Part shown: positions 1 through 31,030 of the stretch, in pieces
How the letters are laid out: every line of letters starts with the position of its first letter
How positions within the stretch are numbered: position 1 is the stretch's first letter
Assembly: GCA_964247055.1 (NCBI GenBank)
Contig: OZ176054.1
Span: forward strand, 10,292,001-10,356,000
Length of the DNA: 64,000 nucleotides
Origin: Paragordius varius
Taxonomy: Eukaryota; Animalia; Nematomorpha
Direction: 5' to 3'
Notes under the pieces: model-generated
Database searches by the model: none
Seen by the model: the letters and a program-made list of their open reading frames with translations, nothing else
What the model was told of the DNA's origin: nothing
Translations under genes and position numbers: made by a program

Positions 1-15
1 ATAATCTCAATAATT

Positions 16-2244
16 ATGGAACAATTAAAATTTGTCACTCCGTTTTTATTATGCAAATATTATTTGAATATCATGTGATATTACAGGGAAGATCAATTTT
101 TTATTTCTTTGACTAAAAGTGCAGCCATCGGTGAAGAATAAATACCATAGTTTTTTACAATCATACAGACATTTAATAATATAATTATTTATATTTAAAA
201 CAGGAATTTCACGACGACCTTCTCACATAGGTATAAATTTATTATTTATGCTTAATTATAATATTTTAAAATTCGGTAAGTTATATATATATATATATAT
301 ACACTGTATGAAAAAAAGAGGGTTAATTATTTAACAAAAAATTTTTTTTATGAGATAGCTTATGACCAGCGAATTCCTTTTCCGCAATTTTTATTTGTTG
401 ACGACCCTTTTGAAATATTGAAAGAAAATCGAAATCGGGCAAAAAGTGAAAATTAATGATATGAGATATTATGGTTTAATATCATTTTATGAGACATTTT
501 CAATATATAAATAACCTAAAATCATATAGTTAGGGTTTCTATAAAATTTCAGCTCAAAAGATAGTTTTTTTTACTGAATAAAATATGAATGTTAAGATTT
601 TAATAGTGAGTGTAGCTAGTAAATAATTATAAAAAATATTAATATAGTTTTTTAAAAAAAATTGTCTTTTAAATGTGTTAAAACGCCATCTGTTGAGCAC
701 ATATTATATAGAAACCCTAATTATATGATAGGCTATCTATATATTGAAAATATCTCCTTAAATTATAATAAACCATAATATCTCAACTTTTCATCATTTT
801 TTGAATTATCCTTAATTTTCACTTTTTGCCCGATTTCGATTTTCTCTCAATATTTCAAAAATTAGGTTGAAAACAAATAAAAATTTTCACTGCAAATGAA
901 TAGTCTGGTCATAAGCTACCTCATGAAAAAAAATTATTTGGTTAAAAATTTTTTGCTATCAGATTATATGTATTTCAACGAGTTATATTTTGTGGACACT
1001 GTGTATAGCAATCATTGGTTTAGTTTTTAACTAAAGGTAAATTTTGTTGGTGATTTTTTTTCTCAAAAAACATTTTGCCGAAAATTAAGATTGGGTGATA
1101 CTTAGCATAATTCCCTTAGACTTGTGTTATTGTATTTAGTAAATACAGCTAAAACCGATATTATTAGCTATAGAGGTATTTATTTAAAGAATAATAATGT
1201 TTTTTAAGCACAAATATCGAAAAGAGTAGCATAGCGAGCTATTGCGGCGCCCGGTGATACTGACTTTATCTTTCAGTTAATTTTGTCAAAAAAATAAACA
1301 ACTTGAGTTAAAGTATAAAAAAAATATTATTTCAGCAAAAATAATGACGCACGGGGCATAAGTATACCCCTTCATCCCACAACCTGGCGAAAAAATATAA
1401 TTTACATAAAAAGCATTTCTCACTAACTCACTGTATCGTCAACCTCTTAATAAATATTTGTTATACATATACACTTCTAAAATTGAGGGTAAAAAAATCT
1501 GATGAAATATATATATTGATAGAAAAATATAATTCAGGATTATCATTATGCTTTTAGTTTTGGCTCTTACGAGTGATATACGAAAGTTTGCACTTATGTC
1601 GTAAGTGATTCTTTATATTACAAAATGGCAAATTTAGATCATTTTGTTAAATAAATTTTGTTGAAAGTTAAATGCTTCATTTCAACAAAATCATTAAATA
1701 TATAAATCATATATAAAAAGTAAAACAAAATTTTATAGAATATGTTTAAGGTGTAAGCCCCTTACCCAATTTTTTTGCTTTCCTATGGGTAGTAGTCCTA
1801 TAAAAAATTTAATTTTTAGCAAAATATTGAAAGCGTACTTTATACTAGCGGCATGATAAAATCGTTATACAAATGTTATAAGATAATATAAAAAAAGTTT
1901 TCATATAATTCGATAATGCTAAACATTTCTATCACATCAGTATTTAAATTATAATATTTATTCATCTTTAAATTTATGTTAAATATAAAATATCATTTAT
2001 GAAAAAATTATTAATTAAAGGCAATTATATACCATTTCATCATGCATCAACATAATATGAAGTAAGCTGCATTTTTTTATAAAAAATTTTATTTGATGTC
2101 AAAATTATAAAATTTAAAATTTTTAACGCGCAATCTCGGCATTTTAGTGTTTTAATTTAAGATTACTAATCCACAGAACGAAAAAATTAGTACTTTGAGC
2201 CCAAATCTAAAAATTCAAATCTTATATTAATTTTATTTTGCTTT

Positions 2245-2294
<50 letters not shown>

Positions 2295-5200
2295 TATGAT
2301 AGATTTTGGTGATTGATGAATAAAGATTTTAGCTTTCATCAAAAAATTTTTATTTAACAAAATAGGTGCAATTGCCATTTTTTGATATAAAGCACTTACC
2401 ACAAAAGTATTAATAACCTCCTTACACTCGTAGGGGTCACAACACACTCTCAATTGGTTACATTTATCTATCAGATATATGTTTCAAGATATTTCTTTTA
2501 TAGACACTATGTATTTAATACATTATTATGATTACAATAGAAGATATTGTTGAGGAAAACCCTCCATTATGGGACTTCGAGGAGGAAATCGAGGAGGAAA
2601 TCGGTAATTACTTTATTATATATAGTTTTTATACCCAATAATTTCTTATGTTTCATACGATAGTTTTGCTTTAAGGTGCTTCAAATTACTTTTTGTTTCC
2701 AAAAATTAGATAATTTTTGAAGTTATCATGCAAACTTTTTGCTGCTAATTTTCTAATTTATCGGCAGCATGTTAATTATAAATTAATATTTTAATTTAGG
2801 TATTTTAATGCTTAATAATCATATTTTAACAAAAGTTAATTATGATAATATAGTATCCTAGTAATAGTATATTAGGGAAAAAATAGGCTTTTTTTATAAA
2901 AAGATTAAGTAGTAATATATCTATATACATATATATTTAGACAGATAGACTAATTTAATATTTTTTTTCTTTTTTTGGATGTAACATCTTTGATTTTTTT
3001 GGATCACGCTCATAATTATAAAGTTTTGTCATCTATATATTTATAAATATAATAGATATCGAAGATGCTGAGGTTGCAGATATAATGTGGGATAATGTCC
3101 TTGTTATGCTAGAAGAATATAGTCCTCCTATGCCTCGTCCCTCCTCTCCTATACCCGAATTAGACGAGTCACTTGATAGTCCGCCTGCTGAATGGAGTAT
3201 TTATTAATGATTTTTATTTTTTTCTATTTACGGTGTTTGGATAATGCACATATTTTGGGTTTTTTCATGAGATTATATCTAAGAAAACAAACAAATGCCA
3301 TATAGTATATAATTTGCAAAAACGAAAGCGCCAAACACCCAACTATTAGTATTAAATTTAATGTAATTATATAAAAATAACGTAATGTAACTCCAATAAT
3401 TATTTTTTTTATAAAAACGTTTTTGAGGTTCTTTTAATTATGACTTATTTAAATTCCTGCAAAAGTTAAATTACAAATTGAAGCTTAAACTATCTTAATG
3501 AGTCGTTGAGCTTCGAAATCGGCCATATGAATAAGCCAAACGAGCCAAATGAATACTGATAAAAAACCAGCTTAACACTTATTAAAAAGAATTTTTACTC
3601 CTTAAATTATATTCAGTTTTTTTTTTTCAATCTTATAAACATTGAGTCTTGCTCACATATATATGGTCCACTCGTTCTGGCTTACTCATCGAAATGCCTT
3701 GCACAATCCTTATTTACATTAAACTTAGATATTATCTTCAAGCAATATTTTGATATTATATACATATATATATATATAATATATTTAACTCTAAACGACC
3801 ATCATTGGGAGCCAAATTATAGTCATAATCGTTTTTTGAGATTGCGGGACAGAATCTTGATATTATGTTACCAAATATGAAACTCAACACTTCATTACAT
3901 TTTTGAGTAGTTAAAGAATATTTAAAAAAGCTGGTTTTTTAGGTGCCTACAGAAAATTTTTTTATAAAAAATAAAATAATCTATTAATATACGTTGTCTT
4001 AAGCTTAAGTAGCTAAAAAACAGTTAAAACATATTTTGTAAAGTAATAAAATTTAGTTTTAAAATACGCTAAGTTCTATTTTATTCATTTTTTTAATATT
4101 AATTTTAAACTGTTTGTTAAATAATTATGGTTAAAAGAAAAATTCAAAAGTACTTAGATATCAGATCTGTACTAACTCGTATTCATTTAAAATTATAAAT
4201 ATATCCTTAAATTGCGCTCATTTGATTTTATGGAACTATGATAAAATTTAATCTAAAATACTAGCATTTGATAACTTTCTAAAAAGCTGAGTGTTGCATA
4301 TGAGGAAAAAACCAAGAAACTGATATTAAGCAGTCGGTCTTTTTATGAATTGTTATATAAAACGTTTATTTATGTATTAGATAGCGTTAACTTTGCAACT
4401 CAATAGAAAAGAGTAAATTTTTTAATATGGTTAAATAAGATTCGATTATATGGGAAAAGCGCCTAAAATGTAACAGATTCTTGAAACAAAATTAAATTAT
4501 AAATTTTAATATGTAAATGGGGTCATCCGTTTTGTTTTAGAATGCTTAGTGTTTGCATAATAGCTTTTAAGCTTTGTGTATTTAAAATGTGATTAACCCG
4601 TTCGGTACCTTACATAAAAAATTATATATTTTCAAATCTTAGTTTTATAAATTCAAGGGCCTTTTTTACATTGAAGATGTAAATTGAATTTTGAATCTTA
4701 TTTAAACACCAAGAAGCATTTAAATTACCATTTTCTATTAATGGAAACCCTAAACCATTTTGATTATTAGATATCAGGACTTTATTTGTGTGTAACTCCA
4801 CCCCATATAATAAACCTCTGGCTGCATTATAATTCTAAATTTGGCACACTATGACATATATACGATTTTAATATTTAAACATTGTTTTCCGCAGTTAATT
4901 AATTAATCATACAGCAAAATATTTAATATTTTATTTGTAAAATTAAATTCTCCTAATTTATAATATATTTATAATTACTTTTAGATCAAGTCAATGAAAA
5001 CGAAGGTAAATTTTTATTGTTAATGGAGACAATCTATAAAAAATAAATAATTTGATTATAATTAATAGAATAGTTATTTGCTATCGATATAAAATAATAT
5101 ATTTTTATCAATGTAAATATAAAATTATCGAGTTTAGAGATATCTTTTTCCTTGTTTTATTATCAAACTTGGACTACCATTATTCATATTTAAATTTTTA

Positions 5201-7970
5201 AAAAATTTTTGCTTATGTCTTATAAGTGGGTAATAGTTTGTTATTGATTTGATGTGACCAAAATCCCCAATGATTATTTTACTTATTTAATGCCAAAAAT
5301 CACACCTTGCAATTTCTTATATATTATTTATATAGAAATTATGAATGCTGAAAATCCGAACGGTATTAAAATAAAAATAATGTAAAGCGGAACTTGAAGC
5401 ATGGTTGGATGATGTATCAAGTATATTTCATTCATATTTAATTTTCAACTTTAAGGCATTTCATCTGACGACTTTAACGCAGGTATATAATTACGTTGGA
5501 ATTTAATATTTTTATAATTTATCAATCCTAATCTATTTTTATTAATTAAAATAACTATTAACTAATATGTAAAAATCACTTTGCGTATAATTCATTAACT
5601 CCTTGAAAAGGATACGACTGAAGGACTGTAGAAATTTGTAGTTAGGAGTTATTATCGGCATCATGACCCTTTTTATCAGATAAACTAAAATTAAGTTTTT
5701 TAATTTATTCAATTAAATAATATCGCAAAATGATCAATTACTTCATCTTTTTTGTATGAGGAATCTATAATACCCACAAACTAGTAATTTTCTGGGAAGG
5801 TATACTCCACAAATTAGCATTTAATTTTTAAGTCGGAAAAATCCAGTATAAGCTTAAGCTAGTTATTTTATAGGCACTGGTTATAAAAAGCTCTACTGTA
5901 GGTACACTATATATATATATCCATTATTTATTGCAATTCACCATTTAGCTGTTGAAGGACTAACATCTGGTAGATAATTATCGCTATTTTTGACTCTGCA
6001 ATATATTTATTTGGGCATACTAACAATAAACAAATTATTTATAATATGGTTAAACAATAAATAAATAATCTAAAAAACTATAAATACAATTCTCTCTTTT
6101 AGGATTAGTAATAATATAGAAAAAAGAGGTTTAAAATTTCAAGTTATTTAAATCCGTTTAAATTATATTGGGAATTAGTTTGAAAGCCATAGGTTACATG
6201 TTATATATTCTTTAAAATGTTGTTGAAATTGATGTTAAAAGATTTGCAGAACATGCCTGATGTTTTAAACAATGAAGATACCGTGGAAGCAGATAGTTTG
6301 ATTCCAGAAGAACAGCCTGGTATAATTTACACTATAATTTTAGGACCATCTAACTCGAATCAAGATAGACCACTTTTTGGGGATACCTCTTCAGATGAGG
6401 AGCCTAGGGAAAAAAGAAGTAATACTTTCATAAATTAATCTAGAAACATTCAGTGGTCTACAATTGATAAAAATATATTTAAAATTAATCTATAATATCT
6501 CTATCAATGTTGTAAATAAACTGGAATATTAAGATTTAATTAACTAATGTTAACCAACAATGTCTGATTTATCCCGTATTTTAATCCGATTGCAATACTT
6601 TAAAAGATTTTTTTACAAATTGTGCAAAATATTTTACGGACTAATTTTCCTATACATTAGTTAAACTCTCGGATAAACAACCCAATGAAAACGTTCCTAA
6701 GGAAGAAGGTATAGATAAATCAACTGATTTCTCTCAACATAAATAACCTATCAAATAACTGTTACATTTATGAAATAGATCATAAACAGGGATCAAATAA
6801 GAATGAGGATAGGAATATTAATCCACCAAGGCCCGGTAATAAAATTTATATCTAAATTTTTATGGTTTACATATAAATTTTGAATAATTTGCTGTTCTAT
6901 ATATAAAGATAGAAATAATGGTAGAAGTGATGGTGGAAGTAATCGTAGAAAAACTAGATTAGATGGTAGAAATACAAGTAATGTACTTTAAGAGATTTGA
7001 CCCTTTAACATTTTTTATCAAGCTACTCAATAACGAGTGTATAAATATACTTTTTCTTCCATGTTTTGCCGTCGTAGGCGTCTTTAAAATCAATTTTTCG
7101 TTCCTTTAAATCTTTTGTGATAGTTTTGTACGTTTTAAAAGGATGACCTAATAGACCTCATGAATCTAATAATGCTCTTATTCAAAATATATCATCATAT
7201 CTTCGCTCAATGCGTCCTAACCAGCTTTTTTGGTTTGGATTGTATGATTAATTGAATATATTTGAAAGATGGTGTGGGCATGAAATTATTATTGAAATTG
7301 TACCCTTAAATTATATCTAACTGCCTTTCAAAAAAATAAATTTATGCATAACCGGTAAATATATCTTTAAAAAGTTTTTTATAATGTCATTAGACTGGAA
7401 CTGCCCTCAAGAGCAGCGACTAATCTTTAATCAAATATTATATTAATTTATTTAGTGCCAAAATCTCTCCCCGAAATTCCAACTGCTCTACAAGGTTCCC
7501 TTTTAGGAGCCATAAGTGGTAAAATAATTATATTATTTGTTTCTTTTGAATTCAAATAAAAAACATATATTTTGAAATATAGCAGAAACAGCTATAGGTA
7601 TGACCTAAAATTATTTTTATAAAATTAATATCTATTATAATTTGTATTTATTAATATTTTATAGTTGGAAAAGGTAGTAGTTTGCATTGTGTTTTTAACA
7701 ATTTTTTATATATTAACCAAACATACATATAGGCGGAATCTTGGCTGGAGGTTTGATTTTTATTGATATAATTTTAATTATTTAGGCATTTTAGCGACCA
7801 CAATTGGAGGTATCTGAAATAGTAAAATTTAAGGTGTAATTGGAGGCCTAGTTGGATCAAAAGGATTATCTTTCTCAAGTGAGGAATTATGTTTGTAGCT
7901 TTAATATTAATTATATTTATATTTGTAATTTATAAAATTTCAATTAAAATAACGCTCAGCCTATATGTAA
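16..7970 (+). CDS. Predicted micro-exon gene: acidic/low-complexity orphan protein with C-terminal glycine-zipper (GxxxG) hydrophobic segment; could be two genes
   Basis: Chain of AG..GT-bounded, stop-free exons; those from 204 onward are phase 1-1 with lengths divisible by 3: 16-41, 87-130, 204-230, 2541-2603, 3056-3196, 4985-5005, 5336-5362, 5388-5420, 5456-5482, 5949-5969, 6242-6319, 6344-6418, 6444-6452, 6661-6708, 6779-6835, 6909-6977, 7456-7518, 7583-7597, 7665-7673, 7733-7750, 7786-7809, 7834-7878, 7960-7970 (TAA). The C-terminus reads ...ALQGSLLGAISAETAIVGKGGILAGGILATTIGGVIGGLVGSKGLSFSTYM*. Exons are GC-richer than their flanks. The 5' exons are least certain; 2528-2603 plus 3056-3207 could alternatively be a separate 75-aa gene. 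Confidence 0.6.
325..950. mobile_element. Non-autonomous inverted-repeat (MITE/foldback-like) element
   Basis: Arms ~325-547 and ~702-950 are reverse complements, e.g. TTTTTTATGAGATAGCTTATGACCAG vs CTGGTCATAAGCTACCTCATGAAAAAA, and GAAAATCGAAATCGGGCAAAAAGTGAAAATTAA vs TTAATTTTCACTTTTTGCCCGATTTCGATTTTC. Confidence 0.75.
1636..2365. mobile_element. Degenerate inverted-repeat element related to 16090-17225
   Basis: 1636-1710 is the imperfect reverse complement of ~2295-2365. The motif GCAATCTCGGCATTTT(A/T)GTGTTTTAA at ~2130 recurs at ~17025. Confidence 0.55.
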
Positions 7971-9350: not shown

Positions 9351-11246
9351 ATACCAACCAAAATGTATCAATTTCTAACACAGAAAGTACGTTTTTATCA
9401 TGCATTTTGTCTAATTAAATTGTCTTTATGAGCCAAAACTAATTTTCTTTTTGCCTGTATGTAGCAACTAATAATGGTAAAATTTATATTAAAATCTCCT
9501 AGGCACTAGTTTTATTATAGAAGTTCCCGTAAACTCAGCCCTCCAAACAGGTAAAACTTTTCATGTAACTTAATATGTTTATAGGTACGACAGTAGAGCC
9601 ATATAACGGTAAAATATTATGTGATGAAAAATAGATACTGAAGAAAATATATATTATTCTGATTCCAACGTAACATCAACCATCATCTCACAAAGTGATG
9701 ATTGCCTTTCGATCAAAATTGATGTACCCAATACAGGTTAATGCCATTGATATTTAATGGCTTAATTTCAAATAAATACACTTTATGAAATTGCTTTCAT
9801 AAAGATCCCATATAATTTTCATAATAACTCAGGATAATTGGTTCTTTTTGAAACCAAATATATATATATACCAGAAATTATTAATTCTTACCCAAAAATA
9901 TTAATATCCAGTACATTCTGTGAAATATTTTCGCATTACTTATATATATTTTCTAAATTAAACTTATAGTATTATACTACTTTTAATCATTTTAAACGCA
10001 TTTCTATTTTGGAAGATTTTCAAATGATAATTTATTAATTACCCCTATAATAATTATATAGTGTTGAAGCAAAGTAATTGCTTTAATGGAAAATCATCAA
10101 TTTACGGGATTAAGAGTTATGATATGTGGATGGAAGATGGGGAAAATGGAACAAAATTTATAATTGATTATGAGTTGTCGCGATTATCTGAAAAAAATGG
10201 TTGGGTCGTTTTCAACATGGACGGTTTGAAAAGAGTGACAAAAGTGAATTATGCGGTATGCAGATATTTTATAATATAATATGTTTTATTATAAAAACTA
10301 CTGCTTTATCTAACATATAAATAAAGAAAGCTTTATAAGGCATTTGTTTCTTTGGTTTTTACAAGTGTCGTTTAATAAGAAAGTTTGATTTTAAAATTTA
10401 TTATATAAGAATTGGTTGTGTATTGATTTTATTAGTTATGAGATATGAATATAATAATAAATAGCAGAGATAGTCCCCTTAAAAATACACCCCATTGTCA
10501 TTTACTATTATTAAAAAAAATTTTTAGAGTTACCCAATCTAATATGTTTCCTAGAAACTTGTGTAATTATTGTTTTTGAATATCGAATAGAATGTCACCA
10601 GATTTGTCGTAGAAAATATGGAGCCCGGAGATTACTCAATACAGTTACAAACAGCATATGGCCGAGAAAGGAACATATCTCGTCCAATAGAGACATCTTT
10701 TTACTGTAAGCCAATTATTTTTATAATTACAGTAGAGTATGGTTAAAAACAAATTATACAATTTTTTTTCTATACATTAACATTATTTTTGTTTATTTTA
10801 TTAAGGGCTACCTTTTTTTACCACACAATAAACTAAATTTAATTTACCTTACTAGTCATTTATTTGAACCATTTTATCTATACTCTTCCTAAAATAGCCA
10901 ACATTAAATTATATTTTTGTGATATCTATATTCCAAAAAAACCATTGTATTAAATTTGATTTCTTATGTAGCACCTTAAGCCACACATTTTTAAAATGGG
11001 CTAAGGTCCTTAAAATAAACGAAAGAGAGCCAAGGTTGCTGAAAAAATCAAATACAAATATATAAAATAGTGTGTGTTATTAATAATTTTAGCAAGCTTT
11101 TGTTGAGACGTTCTCAGGGTTATTTTGAAGAATCTGGAAATGGATTAATAAAATATTATACAAAACTTATTTTAAGTAATTCATTGTTGACGATAATATT
11201 TTCAGTTTTAATAATATAAGTCGCACCAATTTCTGTAAATTTTCTG

Positions 11247-13131: not shown

Positions 13132-15492
13132 CTTAATATTTTTATGTAGACGATCGCATGAGATATGCTGGTAAGTTTTATATTAAAAATTAGTAAATTT
13201 AAAATTTTTTAAATCAAGCGTTATTTAATCTTTAAATAATTTATACATAAGCATCATCTTTTTATAAATTAATAACTTTGGATTAAAATTAACGAATGGA
13301 ATCGATTTATAAATGCATTGAAAATAATAGATTTTACAGTAGCGTAAGATGATAAACAACAAACGGTTTCAATTAAACATTTTTTCCAATATTTTAACAT
13401 GGATTTAGCTTATTTAATTATGAGCACTATTTTTACACAATAAGCTATTGTATATTACACATTATTGAAAGACCATACTATCGATGATGGTAAATAGGAA
13501 ATCATGCTAATATATATGTTAAAAATGGCCACTTAGTATCTGGATTCTATTGTGATTGTGTCCGCTTATATCCTTTAAGTTTTTTAGGCGTAGTTTAAGT
13601 GAAACGTAACAATTCATAATCTTTTAAAAAAACTAAAAAGTATAAATTTTGAGTGTTTGTAAATAGATAAATTCGATAACATTATACCTTATATTTACCA
13701 ATTTTATTTTTAACAATTTTGTAACTTTTTTTCACCAAAAAGGTGAAGAAATGTTAATATAATGTTTCAAAACTGGGAGTTGATTGAAAAGAGCTAATTG
13801 TTAAAAGCTAATATTTTAATTAAGAATTTTGATGCACCAAATAAAATGTAATAAAAATTAAAAAATATTCATTCGCATTCACATTCCTTTTAAAATATTG
13901 CAATCACACATTAGTATTTACCCCTGAAGAGAGAAAAAATATGCTTAAGGATGACTATGGTTGTATTATTGATAATAAAACCTTGCAAGTATGCACAGAA
14001 TATTTGAATATGATCTTAACTAACCAATATCACATATTTTTGGAGTCAGAAAGTAAAGCACTACTGGATACGGTTGTTGAAATTAACCGTGTAAGTTTTA
14101 ATCATTATTACAGTAAAAACTGAAACTATGCGGACAAATATTCTTTTTCAAAAGACAACCATACTTTTTATAATTTTTGATATATAAAACATTTAATTAC
14201 AATCGTAAACTACATATGATCGTGCTACCAATTTACATTTCCATTTTATTTTTGCAGTTTAAAACAATCAGTTATACTTAAAAAAATCAAGATTCAATAA
14301 ATATGGTGTCTTTTAGAAAAAAATATTTGTCTTTATATTTTTACATTTTGTCCGTTTAGATTCAATTTTTACTGTGTATATTATTATAAAATTAACAATT
14401 ATTACTGTTTTGATCAATACACTGGTAAAAAGGATATTTATATAATAAAGAATTTGTCTAGATGTAACTTATGTGATCTATTTACAATAAAAATTTTGTG
14501 AAATATATTTTTAGTTATAGAATTATTTTGTTTCAAATATGATAAATTCGTACTAATAAATTTGGCTAGATTCGATAAATTAATTTAATTTAATAAAAAA
14601 ATTTAATTTTGTTTATAATTTAAGTAATAGTTTTTTTATGCGAAATTTATTTTTTATGTTTTTCATTTGAATATATATTAGGATAAAAATTGTTTTACAT
14701 TGGATTTGAATGGAATTACTTTGGAGGATGATGAATACTCTTTGGTATATAAACCCATACCCAACATTGGCAGTTCTTATGGAATATTGGTATTTTCGGT
14801 TGTTGGATCCAATATATCGCATATTTGAATTAACGAAGCTATTGATTGATTCATTATGCCAAATAAATCAAATTTTAATTTGCATCAAATATTCACAATC
14901 AATAATATATAAATGTATCAATGTTCTTGGTATTTAAACTATTCAACATCATCATTAAATTTACCATAATTTTAAAGCAAAGGGATAACAAGAGTATGCT
15001 TGAACCTGGTTAGATTAAATTAGTAGGTCCAAGTGTCTAAAAATTAATAAAACCCTTAATTACTGAGAACTGGGGACGACAAAGTAAAGGTAATGGTAAA
15101 TTTATTATATGTTGTGTGAATGGTGGTTTATAGTAATGATCTATATATATATATATATATCTAAGATAATTAGGTCTAATGTTTTCACATATATCAAGGT
15201 GAGATGTTTGCTTAAATACATTTATCTCAAGGTATAATAATAATATTCACAAGTGGTGGTGAGGTTATAATAATATAATAATAGTACACAGATAAGTTAA
15301 TAGGTTAATATAATAATATATAACGAATGTTGTTTGTGCGGTTAATCTAATCGTGTAATAAAAGATTCTATTCAAATTAGCCTGTCAGTTACCACTCTAA
15401 CAATTACAAAATAAAATTCAATACAAGGATACCTTAAAAATATTTATGTTATTTAACATTAAACTAAAACACATAAAATTAAGATTGGTGTC

Positions 15493-25315: not shown

Positions 25316-28300
25316 TCATATTTTTTGTTTTCGCTCAAATTTTGTGACATTTCTATAGTTATTTTCAGTCCTTCCAATGGATTTTTCCCTTTGATGAGCA
25401 GTTTTTATCAATGGACTTTTGTGAATCTTACAATCGAATGTTTGGCCCATATACAAAATTTGCAAAGGTGAGTTTGTTTGCAACAATCGAGTTTTTAACT
25501 CTTTAGATATGTATCCTAATGCAACATGTCTTCCTAGGTCCCAACTATAGGCACCGCTCGTTGTAAATCCGATACACTAAAGTGTTAAAAAATAAGGGAA
25601 TATTTTTTAAAACAATTTTTATCAAAAAAACAAAGAGTCAAAAATACAATCGTTTTACCTTTCATTTTGGTCTATAACAGCTAATTAATATAATGTTTGA
25701 CACAAAATTGAAACATTCATCCTAAATAATTTTATTTGAAAATTATCACTATTCAGTAAAATAAATTACCTCGTTATCGAACCACAAGCTTTCATTACCA
25801 TCCAAATCAATTGCATCTATCCCTATGGACTCATGGTTCAAGAGTTGGGTTGATTGTTTCGAGGAAATGTTTTGCATCGTACTATTATTCTCAATGGTAA
25901 AATAACACAAAACTTTATCGGGAAAGTTTGTTTCAATAAACTTCTTTTTTATCTTTGTAAGGTTTGAAGCCCCATTGAAATTTGTGTTTTCGTTATCTAA
26001 CCGTATAAACATACCTAAGCCAGCTTGATACGGATTTGAGTCCATATTCATCTAATTATGTATTAGAAAAACCATTTTATTTTCCTCACAAATTTCATTC
26101 ATTTATACACTTTTCTAGATATTTCCCACAATGTTTGCTATTTAATCACCCTGAGTTTTTATCAAATTCTTTTAAAAATTTGGAGTTGGTATATTAATAT
26201 ATTCACAGTAATCCCCTAAAAACAGTTTCAGCTCATTTGTCAAAATTTTATCAGTGAAAACATTAATTTCTTAAACCAAAAAAACCAAGTTTAAGCATTA
26301 AAAGGGTCAAAAATAATATTAGATATCTACTTAAATTCATGGTAAAAAGCAAAAAATATGCAGCCTTCTCCAATTCTATAAAGCTTATTGACAAAAGTTT
26401 GATAAAATCGACAAAAAATATTCGAAATATAACGATTATTCAAAGCTTCAATCGCAAATATGAATATGAGAAAAGTGTGATACTAATAATTGATTAAGTA
26501 TAATGCAATAAGTATTAGATAATGTTGAATATTATGCTAAAATAAATTACTTCATGAGACCAGGCACGAAAACCCTTTTCGATACGAAGAGAGTTCATAG
26601 CAAAACTTCCTGCACTTTTAATCCCAAACTCTGCGCCCAGTTCCTCCAATAAACGATAAAGGTTAAGAGAATCCACACAATCTGAATACAATTCCCAACC
26701 ATATTCACCTTCATAATAGGAGAATGTTTTTATTTAGATGGACCAAAAATACATTGCTATTTAATAGCAAAAAAAAGATAAAACACCTGTATAACTAATG
26801 TTTAAGGCAATAATGGGATGTTTAATATCATAGGTCCCCATTGATTTTGGAAACGATATTATACGATTTTGCATATGTTGATTTAATGATGATAAATTCT
26901 GAGCCTGCACTGGGTTTACTTTAACATGCCTTAATAGTTTTTCCATAAGATGTGGTGCCAATTTGCCAGCAAAACTTATGCAATGAAAACTTTCCGTCAC
27001 ATTTTGCAACATTATACTCTCAGCGTAATTGGGTGAATTAGAAATGGAATGTTGCAACCATCTATGACATTTTTTAGAAAAAGTAGATAACAAATAAGTG
27101 TTAGATGATAATACCACATTTGTCAAAAAAATGTAATAAAAATCATCACCTAAAATCGTGAAATTCGGAACCAGAACCCGAAAGTAAGAGATATTCATTC
27201 GGTTTAACTTGGCTAACAGTTAATTCCCCGTACACATTTCCACTTTGGGGTGCTATTATGTGGGATATGACAGTTTCTCCCAACTAATTTATATATTGTA
27301 AATTTATTTGACAAAATTAAAGTAAATTACAAGTATTATTATTTTTATTATTACTTTCGGGGTTTTGTTTGCTAATGTTTCGTTCAAAAATTTTGTCAGC
27401 ACATCAGGTGGTGACAAATCTTTATCGATTGTAGATGAGCTAGTATGGAGGTTATTTGAAAGATTATCACAATGTTCCTCCTTTGTTTGTACTAATCCCT
27501 TCTTTTTGAGGCTTAAATAGTATTTAGCGAACGGTGTTAAATCAAACAACCCTATACGTTCTTTAACAGCAAAGTATTCTTGCCTGACACACGCGTCATG
27601 TATATCAGGTTGAGCATAATAAGATGGTTTATATTTGTTTGCAATACCATAAGATTCGTTGGGAGAAGGAATGATATTTTGATGATCGTAGGCCGTATTA
27701 AAATACAGTGGAGTTTCCCAACCTATTACCCATATATATATATATATTAAAAATAAACAGCAATACCAAATAAGAAAGCGGCGTTTTCTAAACCAGTCAA
27801 TAAAGATATTTGCCAATCAATAAAAACGGTTTCATTTTGGATGAAAAATATCAAAACAAAGTATATAAATAACTTTTAACCATTATCAGCGTAATATTAG
27901 GATATTATTTTTTATAAAAACACAATTATTGAATAACGCTATTATATTCCAATGTCCAATCATGGACTTATTCCTTATGAGTATATTTTTTAACTAAATG
28001 AGTATTTTATGGTTTTAAAATATTATTTAGAAAATATTTAACAATATTATTTTATCGATGGTTTGCATTAATAATCCGGGCTAATCTATAGAATCTATAG
28101 TTTCGGATAAAATAATAAAATTTAAAAAAAATACATTTTCTTCTCAAATTGGTCATTTAACACATCAAATTGGAATTTAAGCATTTGCAACTTTAGTCTA
28201 ATTTGTGTAATTTCCCTATTGAAAACAAGATCCAATGACATCTGAAAAAAAAGAAGAGAGTAGCAAGGTTCAGTTGATTTGGTTCAGCGAATTAAATTTA

Positions 28301-29138
28301 AATAAAGAAGTTATCTATCTAAAATGAACCCACAATAGCAAAATTAAAAGCGGCACTAACGTCTAATAATTGGATTAAGCCCCTGGTTAAACCTTTTATC
28401 GCGATAAAACAAATTGAAGATACATATGGTTAATTATTTCTGGGAGATTGGCTAATAGTTCCGAGGACAAAGAGAAGCCACAAACTTTTAAGTACATACA
28501 TAGTGAACATTTGGGCATATTATGAAACTATTCGGTGAAAAAGGTTTATAAGCCCAAGTTAAACCAAGATCTCAAAAAATGGGTGTGTAAAACTGCGTCC
28601 AAATGTACCCCACCAATAGAATGCTAATATCACTGTCTAGGAACGGCTCCACCTAGATATCGCCAAGCCCATTGACAATTTATACTGGGTGGTACTAATT
28701 GATCATTGCACCCGCTGAGTGGAGGAGAGATGTCAGGAACGGTTAATATTAATATCCTAAAGTTTTTGAAAACATGTTTTTGCCGTTATGGTTACCCGAA
28801 AATGGTAATTACCTATAATGGCTCGCATTTCAAATCGGGGGAACTTGAGAAAACTCTATGGGGTTCTAATATTACACACGTAACCTCCAGTCGCTACCAC
28901 CTACTAACAAATGGGTTGGTAGAGGGAGTAATTTTGTACCTTAAAAAATCACTATTTACTGACTATTAATTCCCCGCCACGGAACAAAGATTGATTCAGA
29001 TTCTTTAGACCTACGGCAACAATTATGACAGTTCAACAAACGGAATTCCAGCGCATCTGTTTACAAAGTACAGAAAGCCCTTTATCATGGATGAAAGCCA
29101 AATGAGTTTATGGATATGCCCAACACTCCACAGGAGAA

Positions 29139-29176
<38 letters not shown>

Positions 29177-31030
29177 GAATAAATTGAGCACTAGAGAGGT
29201 GTGCAGCGTAACCCTCAATGGCAGTTATTCGCAAAAATGCTGACCAATTAAAGATCGCAAAGACTGTTCTGCCGAAGAAAGAAATGGAAGAAAGGAGAAG
29301 AATAAGAATGCCCAGCAATATCACTCAGCCTCACACCTCATCCGCAAATCAAGAAAAAGAGAATAGACCCACGGAGCATGAAATATAACCCCTGAAAACA
29401 TGGACAAGCACACCTAAATCTGGAGATTCAAGTGAGAATCCCCAACAGAAAAGTGAAGAGTTTCTTACTACAACTCATAGGTACCCGTCCGATTCCGATA
29501 ACCACCCGACAGATATCGAGCTTAAAGAAGAAGGTAGGTTAAAGGGTCAATAATCTTAGGACGTAAAAATAAAATGCTTTTGTCCATCCTAGGTTAAACC
29601 TATATATATATATATAAGAAGGAATTGTGGCATGCACAACACATATTAATTGTGTATATCATTTAATTTTAATTATTATACCTAGTAAATTAATATCATA
29701 TATAGAAATAACCAAAAAAATGCAATTTAATTTTTTTTTAAAAAGAGTCATAATGCGAATCATGAAGCTTGTATTTACAATTAAGGACCTTATGATAGGA
29801 CGGCTTCTGAACATACATTCGAATATCACCAAAAATTTACGATTCAAAGATACACTATTATAAAAATAAAATTTTTACCATTGCTAAATCCCATAACTGC
29901 ACCCCGGGCATTTAAATAAGCGGCCAATGATGTAGACCGTGTAACAAAAGGTCGACCGTCATAACGTTGTTCTTTGGGGACAGATTTTGCATTATTCATA
30001 CCGTAGGACTCACGAGCTTTCACGAAAACGAAATCTCTGTTGGTGTTGTGGGAATAAATAATGGTTAATGAATAAGAATATAAAATAAAAATTCGGTAAA
30101 AAAATCACATTTAGTCATTGGACTTAATAGAAAGGATGTAATAATAATATATAGGAAGAATTAGATGTTTTTGTGAGATATCGCTATAACAACTAGAAAA
30201 TTTAAACTAAATATGCAGCAAATATTGAAATTATAACCAACCGCGACTAATACAAATAATTTTTAAAGATTATGTTTAAAACCGTGATTACTATATAGCT
30301 AATCCTTTTAAATAGCAAAATAGGAAAGAAAGGTGTAAATTATTCGAAAATTCAATTATATATATATTTCATAATCGAAATTATATAGTTTATGAAGGCT
30401 AAATCAAGTTTAAGATGGTTGGTTGTCTTTAAAGAAAAACCTAAGTTTTTTAGTTTAATAGTTTATCAATTACATTTTATTATAAGCTAGTCTCTAAATA
30501 ACATATACAGAGAAAATAAAAAGCAAAAATGCAATAAGAAAAGGCTTTACTTGGAGGTCCAATTATAGCGTTCAGAGTCACACTCTATCAAATCATAAGG
30601 TGGTTCTCCATTCAAAATCCATTGAGCCAAATATTTACCCATCCCTCCTGCGTGAACTATGCCATACCTTACAATTTTGTGCACATAAAATAGGATAAAT
30701 TTAGTATAATATCACAAAGGTGAAAACTTTCTTTTTTTTCATTTTAATTGCTAGTTAATTTTTTGGTTTAGGTTCCATACATTTGCTTAAATAATTACGG
30801 TTTAAATGGTTCCGGTTCCAAAAAATTCAAAGATATATTACAATGTCAATAATAGGCAAGAAAATATCAATATATATATATATATATATAAGAGATATTA
30901 TGTTCAACTTTAAACGATTTTAATTTGAAAATTAGGGCCTTATTCAAAAATCCAAAAAGTGCAAAATGATCATCATGGTCCAATTAGTTTTTAGGCGTTG
31001 TTTTTTCTATTAAAACTCCAAAAGTAAAAA

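Follow-up and report, generated by a model that had tools for sequence, protein, structure and literature searches.

Can the many small exons of one gene be left out in any combination, so that a single locus yields many proteins? This question is raised by a 64,000-nt stretch of Paragordius varius DNA (C5:10292001-10356000, hereafter the window), part of an animal genome assembly of 110.6 Mb in 44 contigs. A preliminary description had placed at 16-7970 a gene made of about 20 symmetric exons of 9-141 nt, and had likened it to the micro-exon genes (MEGs) of schistosomes. In this study, we consider it reasonably likely that window positions 204-7878 are the central part of one 36-exon protein-coding gene, whose exons would be spliced constitutively and whose product would probably be a secreted or membrane protein.

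Small exons and their conservation

All 20 exons were located with the lengths and in the order previously given (R1-R20 in Table 1; U denotes exons upstream of R1-R20, most or all before the window, D those downstream of R20 within the window, and numbering follows window positions). Every one is flanked by AG and GT and is open in the frame set by phase-1 introns, where the first two bases of an exon complete a codon. Segments of this kind are also plentiful by chance. Within the introns of 1-7970 there are another 45 AG..GT segments of 9-27 nt whose length is a multiple of 3 and whose phase-1 frame is open, the opposite strand of the same interval contains 59 of the same type, and chance AG..GT segments of at least 57 nt number in the dozens as well. 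The caution attached to the preliminary description, that its exons had been found partly by seeking the property they display, was therefore justified. Because chance segments are so plentiful, inspection of the sequence alone cannot validate micro-exons, and independent evidence is needed.

This evidence comes from paralogs of the window copy in the same genome (copies A-F, H, and J), among which the collinear copies A-F on C5 were found by DNA search; the exons were mapped automatically onto the intact copies B and C, with block alignments in addition. Seventeen exons (R3-R10 and R12-R20) map one-to-one onto both B and C with AG/GT ends kept and lengths divisible by 3. Their lengths change by multiples of 3 only, and the introns around them vary freely in length and sequence. 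Wherever an exon of the window copy differs in length from its counterpart in B or C (12 cases), the difference is a multiple of 3, as compared to 19 of 58 intron length differences, which is the third expected by chance. Over the span of R1-R20, exon identity is 0.81 to C and 0.79 to B, against 0.54 for flanking intron (20+20 nt beyond the splice consensus) and 0.31 for random 20-mers. Furthermore, all mapped exons in B and C are AG/GT-ended, and the window copy, B, and C are stop-free over ~640 codons.

Codon alignments of the shared exons, analyzed by the Nei-Gojobori method, gave synonymous (dS) and nonsynonymous (dN) divergences of 0.50 and 0.15 between the window copy and C (dN/dS 0.30), 0.52 and 0.16 between the window copy and B (0.30), and 0.42 and 0.07 between C and B (0.17). 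The ratio is below 0.45 in every region, being 0.25-0.44 in the central region of R1-R20 and 0.18-0.37 in its Gly-rich part. For exons of 36 nt or less, with interior codons alone, dN/dS is 0.32-0.46 (Fisher p = 0.0007-0.007), and for those of R1-R20 with equal lengths it is 0.20-0.33 (p down to 5e-8). Since these ratios of the small exons are well below 1, selection maintains the micro-exons, which appear to be translated in the frame inferred here. Across the gene, 34 of 36 exons are retained one-to-one between copies at dS ~0.5.

These results bear directly on the explanation that the exons are a chance chain of AG..GT segments in AT-rich DNA, or the remains of a dead pseudogene. The intronic chance candidates of 9-27 nt speak for it, R11 being one of them, and some family members have indeed degenerated. 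Copy A, to which the window copy is most closely related (74-78% identity over exons and introns), carries a TAA within the frame of R6, has lost the R3 acceptor and donor together with 10 nt of R3, and has lost the R1 donor; copy D has stops, TGG in place of an acceptor, a 2-nt deletion, and a TAA in D6. Both are decaying pseudogenes. In the window copy, however, 773 codons run without stop or frameshift, and with the paralog, indel, and dN/dS evidence this leaves the explanation a negligible probability. For the exon chain as a whole, chance origin is refuted.

Thus, 19 of the 20 exons hold, 17 of them in two intact paralogs and two (R1 and R2) with weaker support, and one fails. The 9-nt exon R11 was rejected because A, B, and C conserve neither its AG nor its GT. 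For R9, the upstream acceptor originally chosen is supported over a more obvious CAG at 6249, as the paralogs keep the AG, keep the 8 nt in question as coding, and have indels in multiples of 3.

R1 is conserved in position, AG/GT ends, and open frame in B and C, albeit with an identity of just 0.65-0.68, which is no better than that of its flanks. Downstream of it, A, B, and C have a 39-nt intron and then a 6-nt exon (TTTTAG or TTCTAG, then AATTGG in A and C or AATTCA in B, then GTAAGT), of which the window copy has only a relic. Reading through from 204 to 275 (72 nt) is also open, so that the 3' boundary of R1 is ambiguous, although its length is a multiple of 3 either way. The 12-nt exon upstream of the window has likewise lost its acceptor AG in the window copy. 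Two micro-exons have therefore lost their acceptor here without harm.

R2 has no DNA match elsewhere in the genome and no alignable DNA copy. At its position between R1 and R3, the paralogs carry acidic exons of 48 nt (C) and 51 nt (B) and a 33-nt remnant (A), all AG/GT-ended and open in phase 1, and the R2 donor and downstream intron can be aligned between the window copy and A. The GC content of R2 is 0.44 as compared to an intron mean of 0.24, a value reached by 0.7% of 63-nt non-exon windows, and R2 contains a 12-nt tandem duplication. We accept it as a probably real, fast-evolving exon. A derivation of R2 from the 5' part of R3 was rejected, the local alignment score being at noise level.

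Extent of the gene and its family

Although the small exons hold up well, both ends of the proposed gene at 16-7970 were wrong. There is no conservation upstream of ~190, where a first exon near position 16 had been placed, and the proposed last exon at ~7961-7970 is unconserved in the paralogs. Matches to paralogs run downstream to window 14830, and the duplicated unit begins ~6.3 kb before the window. The gene, which appears to be unannotated and has three times the proposed extent, spans ~21 kb: it begins at C5:10285990, lying 6,010 nt ahead of the window, and ends at window 14828. Exon 1 (C5:10285990-10286029, 40 nt) has its ATG in an AAAATG context, encodes 13 hydrophobic residues, and ends in phase 1. 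It is followed by six further upstream exons, from U2 onward, of 183, 87, 57, 84, 156, and 12 nt, all phase 1-1. The joined frame of 2,331 nt comprises 776 codons with a single terminal stop, or 773 residues without R11. Stop triplets make up 8.3% of intron triplets, as compared to none inside the joined exon frame. The long unbroken run of small symmetric exons described for the central part is thus real, and it reaches from U2 to D5, ~30 phase 1-1 exons in succession. At either end, the gene has conventional domain-coding exons (84-194 nt).

Could the locus instead hold two adjacent genes duplicated as a unit, namely a signal-peptide/acidic/Gly-zipper gene ending just past R20 and a C-terminal-domain gene? 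If the R20 donor is read through, a stop follows within 2-7 codons in the window copy and in A, so that a short isoform would be possible, and the R20/D1 intron is 1,472 nt in the window copy. In B and C, however, this intron is just 179-254 nt. In addition, the phase-1 frame continues stop-free through D1-D5 into the C-terminal domain, D1 has neither a start codon nor a signal peptide, and the donor GT of R20 is kept in all copies but the degenerate copy D. The family as a whole points the same way. It has at least 13 copies, mostly clustered on C5, and genome searches with U2 (N-terminal domain) and D6 (C-terminal domain) gave 14 matches each, which form pairs of like orientation, separated by 11-47 kb, at 11 or more loci. 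The paired loci lie in the C5 cluster at 9.69-10.31 Mb, apart from one on C6, and extra U2-like exons lie on C2 and C4. In the dispersed C6 copy, both halves are collinear within 16 kb. Exon-by-exon tblastn showed that the distant copies H and J, which are 30-45% identical in D6, keep the order of N-terminal domain, acidic exons, hydrophobic micro-exons, and C-terminal domain. Because these distant copies keep the whole order, we regard the locus as one gene rather than two neighbours, and the two-gene explanation as very unlikely.

Single-gene organization does not mean a rigid exon structure. In the hydrophobic part of copy J, the exons are 63, 15, 9, 39, and 45 nt, R18 and R19 being a single exon there (a difference in intron presence or absence), and J also has a second R12-like exon. 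The two lost acceptors of the window copy and the range of 33-63 nt for the exon at the R2 position add to this evolutionary flexibility.

Four introns of the gene are ultra-short, with GT..AG ends and 24-26 nt: 5363-5387 (R5/R6), 6320-6343 (R9/R10), 7810-7833 (R19/R20), and 9609-9634 (D4/D5). Across the paralogs their lengths are nearly fixed, at 25/25/25, 24/27/25, 24/24/24, and 26/26/25 nt, respectively. Other introns carry repeats (Table 1), among which the element in the R14/R15 intron has at least 30 copies on contigs C1-C11 with 70-85% identity. A ~480-nt repeat unit in the U3/U4 intron (C5:10289070-10289660, ~2.4-2.9 kb before the window) is present once in the window copy and in ~5 tandem copies in copy B (C5:10014774-10017267), with more near A and D. 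The micro-exons were also considered as unused copies of exon edges lying in introns, but this was rejected, as no intronic copy of any exon of this gene was found.

In the U2/U3 intron, a block of 65-75 nt (C5:10288470-10288545, ~3.5 kb before the window) is 80-85% identical among the window copy, B, and C; the rest of this intron is unalignable, and the block is not open in the frame of the gene. As a structured RNA it was rejected: the ~65-nt conserved part matched no Rfam family and showed no covariation. It may act in splicing or regulation.

Table 1. Exons and other features of the locus, family copies, and segments of the predicted protein (window positions unless C5, C6, or residues are given)
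Feature	Position	Strand	Description
R1	204-230	+	27 nt, phase 1-1, about the 8th exon of the gene; weaker support
6-nt micro-exon relic	270-275	+	acceptor AG mutated to AA at 268-269 in window copy
Dispersed repeat	287-956	.	two inverted arms, R1/R2 intron; several copies in both orientations near B, C, E, F
Repeat element	1445-2516	.	R1/R2 intron; matches C5:10284516-10285560 and other places
R2	2541-2603	+	63 nt, acidic
R3	3056-3196	+	141 nt (141 in B, 144 in C), AG/GT ends; recognizable in distant copy H
R4	4985-5005	+	21 nt; identity 0.95 to B, C vs 0.40-0.45 in flanks
R5	5336-5362	+	27 nt, then 25-nt intron; kept in B, C
R6	5388-5420	+	33 nt; identity 0.91 to B, C
R7	5456-5482	+	27 nt; in B, C ~190-250 nt 3' of R6, inside otherwise unalignable introns
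R8	5949-5969	+	21 nt; kept in B, C
R9	6242-6319	+	78 nt, then 24-nt intron; 87 nt in B, C (difference 9)
R10	6344-6418	+	75 nt; conserved Lys-Arg at end
R11	6444-6452	+	9 nt, rejected; AG and GT absent in A, B, C
R12	6661-6708	+	48 nt; identity 0.92 to B, C; 80% amino-acid identity in distant copy H
R13	6779-6835	+	57 nt; 54 nt in B
R14	6909-6977	+	69 nt, basic, conserved R-x-T-R motif; 54 nt in B
Dispersed repeat	7009-7302	.	~290 nt, R14/R15 intron; SINE- or MITE-like
R15	7456-7518	+	63 nt; Gly-rich hydrophobic segment begins; aligned in seven copies
R16	7583-7597	+	15 nt; length and AG/GT kept in A-E; sequence variable but hydrophobic
R17	7665-7673	+	9 nt; TAG acceptor and GTA donor in all seven copies aligned and in distant copy J
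R18	7733-7750	+	18 nt; identity 0.94; fused with R19 in copy J (39 nt)
R19	7786-7809	+	24 nt, then 24-nt intron; kept in B, C
R20	7834-7878	+	45 nt; hydrophobic segment ends; not the last internal exon
D1	9351-9386	+	36 nt, phase 1-1; conserved in B, C, E, F
D2	9465-9476	+	12 nt, phase 1-1; paralog-mapped
D3	9521-9550	+	30 nt, phase 1-1; 27 nt in B, C
D4	9585-9608	+	24 nt, phase 1-1, then 26-nt intron
D5	9635-9736	+	102 nt, final exon of phase 1-1 run; in distant copies H, J too; normalized match score ~0.9 to B, C; 31/33 residues same as C
D6	10062-10255	+	194 nt, phase 1 to 0, C-terminal domain; 14 genome matches, 11 paralogs aligned
D7	10591-10705	+	115 nt, phase 0 to 1; paralog-mapped
D8	13150-13170	+	21 nt, phase 1-1; AG/GT ends conserved in B, C
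D9	13930-14090	+	161 nt, phase 1 to 0
D10, terminal exon	14682-14828	+	TGA stop at 14826-14828; AATAAA ~35 nt beyond
Copy A	C5 9.979-9.989 Mb	-	degenerate
Copy B	C5 10.001-10.024 Mb	-	intact
Copy C	C5 10.263-10.283 Mb	+	intact
Copy D	C5 ~9.947 Mb	+	degenerate
Copy E	C5 ~10.22-10.25 Mb	-	collinear paralog
Copy F	C5 ~10.10-10.125 Mb	+	collinear paralog
Copy H	C6 7.668-7.679 Mb		distant copy
Copy J	C5 9.835-9.870 Mb		distant copy
Hydrophobic start	residues 1-19		Kyte-Doolittle 1.9
Basic domain	residues 14-203		net charge +23, four N-x-S/T sequons, ends R-S-K-R
Acidic region	residues 207-378		28% Asp+Glu, net charge -42, 18 Pro, no Cys, no sequon, ends R-E-K-R
Mixed basic stretch	residues 378-436		carries R-K-T-R
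Gly-rich segment	residues 436-494		13 Gly; second hydrophobic peak (1.98 at 467-485)
Linker	residues 494-528		Thr/Asn-rich
C-terminal domain	residues 528-773		five Cys, six sequons

GC content is 20-34% across the window and ~25% over 1-7970. A tRNA scan and an Rfam scan of the whole window were empty, and the window has no long bacterial-style open reading frames, as expected for intron-rich eukaryotic DNA. On the minus strand at 25700-30000, the GC-richest part of the window (0.30-0.34), reading-frame fragments resemble an aminomethyltransferase or a dimethylglycine-dehydrogenase-type enzyme, with motifs judged by eye only; this is probably an ordinary neighbour gene unrelated to the many-exon gene.

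Predicted protein and mode of splicing

Protein features were computed by script from the joined 773-residue model. Hydropathy peaks solely at residues 1-19 and 459-490. The hydrophobic start encoded by exon 1 (13 residues, Kyte-Doolittle 1.93) is conserved in B and C; the signal peptide expected from a MEG-like layout has a candidate counterpart, outside the window. This start would be followed by a basic domain of ~190 residues ending in R-S/V-K-R, a site of the furin-type convertase kind, then by an acidic, Pro-rich, probably disordered middle of ~170 residues and a short basic stretch. A Gly-rich hydrophobic segment of ~45 residues, spread over six exons of 9-63 nt, would form a membrane anchor or hairpin, and beyond a Thr/Asn-rich linker would lie a domain of ~250 residues with five Cys, probably a beta-sandwich. 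The small exons R1-R20 would thus encode the disordered middle and the hydrophobic segment. R-S-K-R, R-E-K-R, and R-K-T-R are at positions 199, 374, and 426, and both the R-S/V-K-R ending the N-terminal domain and the K-R ending R10 recur in H and J. As for the Cys of the C-terminal domain, H shares four positions; J has Ser at the D5 position but shares the other four, and a fifth (D10) is present there as well. Taken together, the product would be a secretory-pathway glycoprotein, processed by a furin-type convertase and either anchored by its Gly-rich segment or secreted.

That no homologue outside the genome can be recognized, as the preliminary description had stated, was borne out by our searches. 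Pfam, run on ten exons singly, gave nothing but sub-threshold hints of an Ig-like or transthyretin-like fold for D7. A D6 profile built from 11 paralogs had no match below 1e-10 among 1.84 billion representative proteins. Seven weak matches to this profile were rejected as relatives, being bacterial Ig/FN3-like or collagen-like repeat proteins aligned in short repeated stretches. The ESM Atlas returned nothing usable for U2 and D6. Absence of homology applies to the larger exons only, because the micro-exon part is too short for exon-by-exon search. The sub-threshold Ig-like, transthyretin-like, and FN3-like matches suggest a beta-sandwich for D6-D7.

How, then, would these exons be used? It is arithmetically true that any subset of the symmetric exons can be skipped without a frameshift or a stop at the new junction. 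The lack of junction stops is not a designed feature but a consequence of the donor consensus, since every phase-1 exon has G or A as its last base. Variation of the MEG kind, in which many combinations of the ~25 central symmetric exons would be left out and ~13 genes would each give many variants, is consistent with a run of ~30 phase 1-1 exons none of which ends in T, with the signal-peptide-like exon 1, with a tandem family without outside relatives, with the disorder predicted for the affected region, and with the undamaging loss of two micro-exon acceptors. However, the micro-exons themselves are under purifying selection, nearly all exons are retained one-to-one between copies, and large structured domains flank the region at both ends. 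Purifying selection and one-to-one retention suggest constitutive exons rather than a diversification device, and we lean towards plain constitutive splicing, so that combinatorial skipping appears unlikely. The stronger proposal, an independent MEG-like device in which ~25 frame-neutral exons of the acidic spacer and Gly-zipper would be combinatorially skipped throughout a ~13-gene family, varying the middle of a convertase-cleaved secreted glycoprotein, is decidedly unlikely.

Under constitutive splicing of the central exons, the ~30-exon phase 1-1 run would be an evolutionary legacy. Starting from a phase-1 signal-peptide exon, the disordered region would have grown by way of symmetric exons or by gaining introns at AG|G sites, and the phase-symmetric layout would make gain, loss, and resizing of exons harmless over evolutionary time. 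Several points weigh against this reading of a constitutively spliced secreted or membrane protein. A cleaved signal peptide together with one membrane span would leave the C-terminal domain, with its Cys and sequons, in the cytoplasm, and the charge around the hydrophobic segment, positive on its N-terminal side, favours the opposite orientation. The domain calls rest on hydropathy and single exons, and splicing itself, constitutive or not, is something we infer from genomic sequence. The exact exon count is 35-36, because two micro-exons of the window copy have lost their acceptor AG; it is 35 if the 12-nt exon is dead.

Comparison with known many-exon genes

In MEGs, ~80% of the coding region lies in symmetric exons of 6-36 bp, and the proteins are small (PMC5825161). 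These proteins are secreted or exposed and vary by exon skipping (PMC5825161; PMC3961193; bioRxiv 10.1101/2023.06.21.545858). The MEG-like layout proposed for this locus is borne out in its symmetric small exons, its signal-peptide-like start, and its tandem family, but not in the share of coding sequence in micro-exons. Here, 16 of 36 exons are 36 nt or less and hold 357 of 2,322 coding nt (15%), and even within R1-R20 alone such exons hold 222 of 861 nt (26%). Because 15% rather than ~80% of the coding sequence lies in such exons, the gene is not a MEG by definition, which is also a point against MEG-like variation. The likeness includes runs of symmetric internal exons divisible by 3, longer end exons, a signal peptide (putative here), lineage-restricted tandem families, and long introns carrying transposable elements. 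In contrast to MEGs, the protein here has 773 residues with structured domains at both ends, and its copies are under purifying selection. Moreover, whereas exon-skipping variation in MEGs is documented at the RNA and protein level, the present gene is known from DNA sequence alone.

The bicycle genes of aphids have many small internal exons, nearly all starting at codon position 2 (PMC9168663), and most genomes have few genes with many exons of one phase (Stern and Han, PMC9168663). The small internal exons here likewise start at codon position 2, which is equivalent to intron phase 1. A signal peptide (putative here) and a large, fast-diverging family that sequence search cannot detect are further likenesses, and the aphid 'megacycle' gene illustrates that such genes can be very large (PMC9168663). 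Unlike bicycle genes with their paired Cys-Tyr-Cys (CYC) motifs, the 773-residue model contains no CYC; its exon sizes are mixed (9-194 nt), and its centre is acidic and probably disordered rather than Cys-patterned. In size (110 Mb), GC content (25%), and intron length (22-27 nt), the genome seems unlike that of a hemipteran.

The known genes with many same-phase exons, the fluke MEGs and aphid bicycle genes, are effectors in interactions with a host and are often overlooked by gene finders and sequence searches. The present locus extends the list to another animal, with a family of at least 13 members that selection maintains and that joins the same exon logic to ordinary domains. Its 24-26-nt introns and 9-nt exons make it a hard test case for annotation pipelines. 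It also lends itself to asking whether splicing makes use of phase symmetry or the symmetry is only an evolutionary by-product; in the lost micro-exons of the window copy and the fused pair and duplicated exon of copy J, evolutionary flexibility is directly visible. If combinatorial skipping were true, a MEG-like diversification device would have been grafted on a conventional two-domain protein, in a lineage unrelated to flukes or aphids.

If splicing is constitutive, the locus would be an ordinary, if extreme, case of a disordered region enlarged module by module. Symmetric exons show a preference for disordered regions and often originate from internal tandem duplication (Schad et al. 2013, PMC3632108), a pattern that the acidic centre found here fits. 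In exon shuffling of the type described by Patthy, class 1-1 symmetric exons predominate downstream of signal-peptide exons. Growth by class 1-1 symmetric exons would be an ordinary mechanism, enough to explain the locus. What sets this gene apart from the usual class 1-1 cases is the unusual length of its same-phase run, ~30 exons, and the number of its exons of 27 nt or less.

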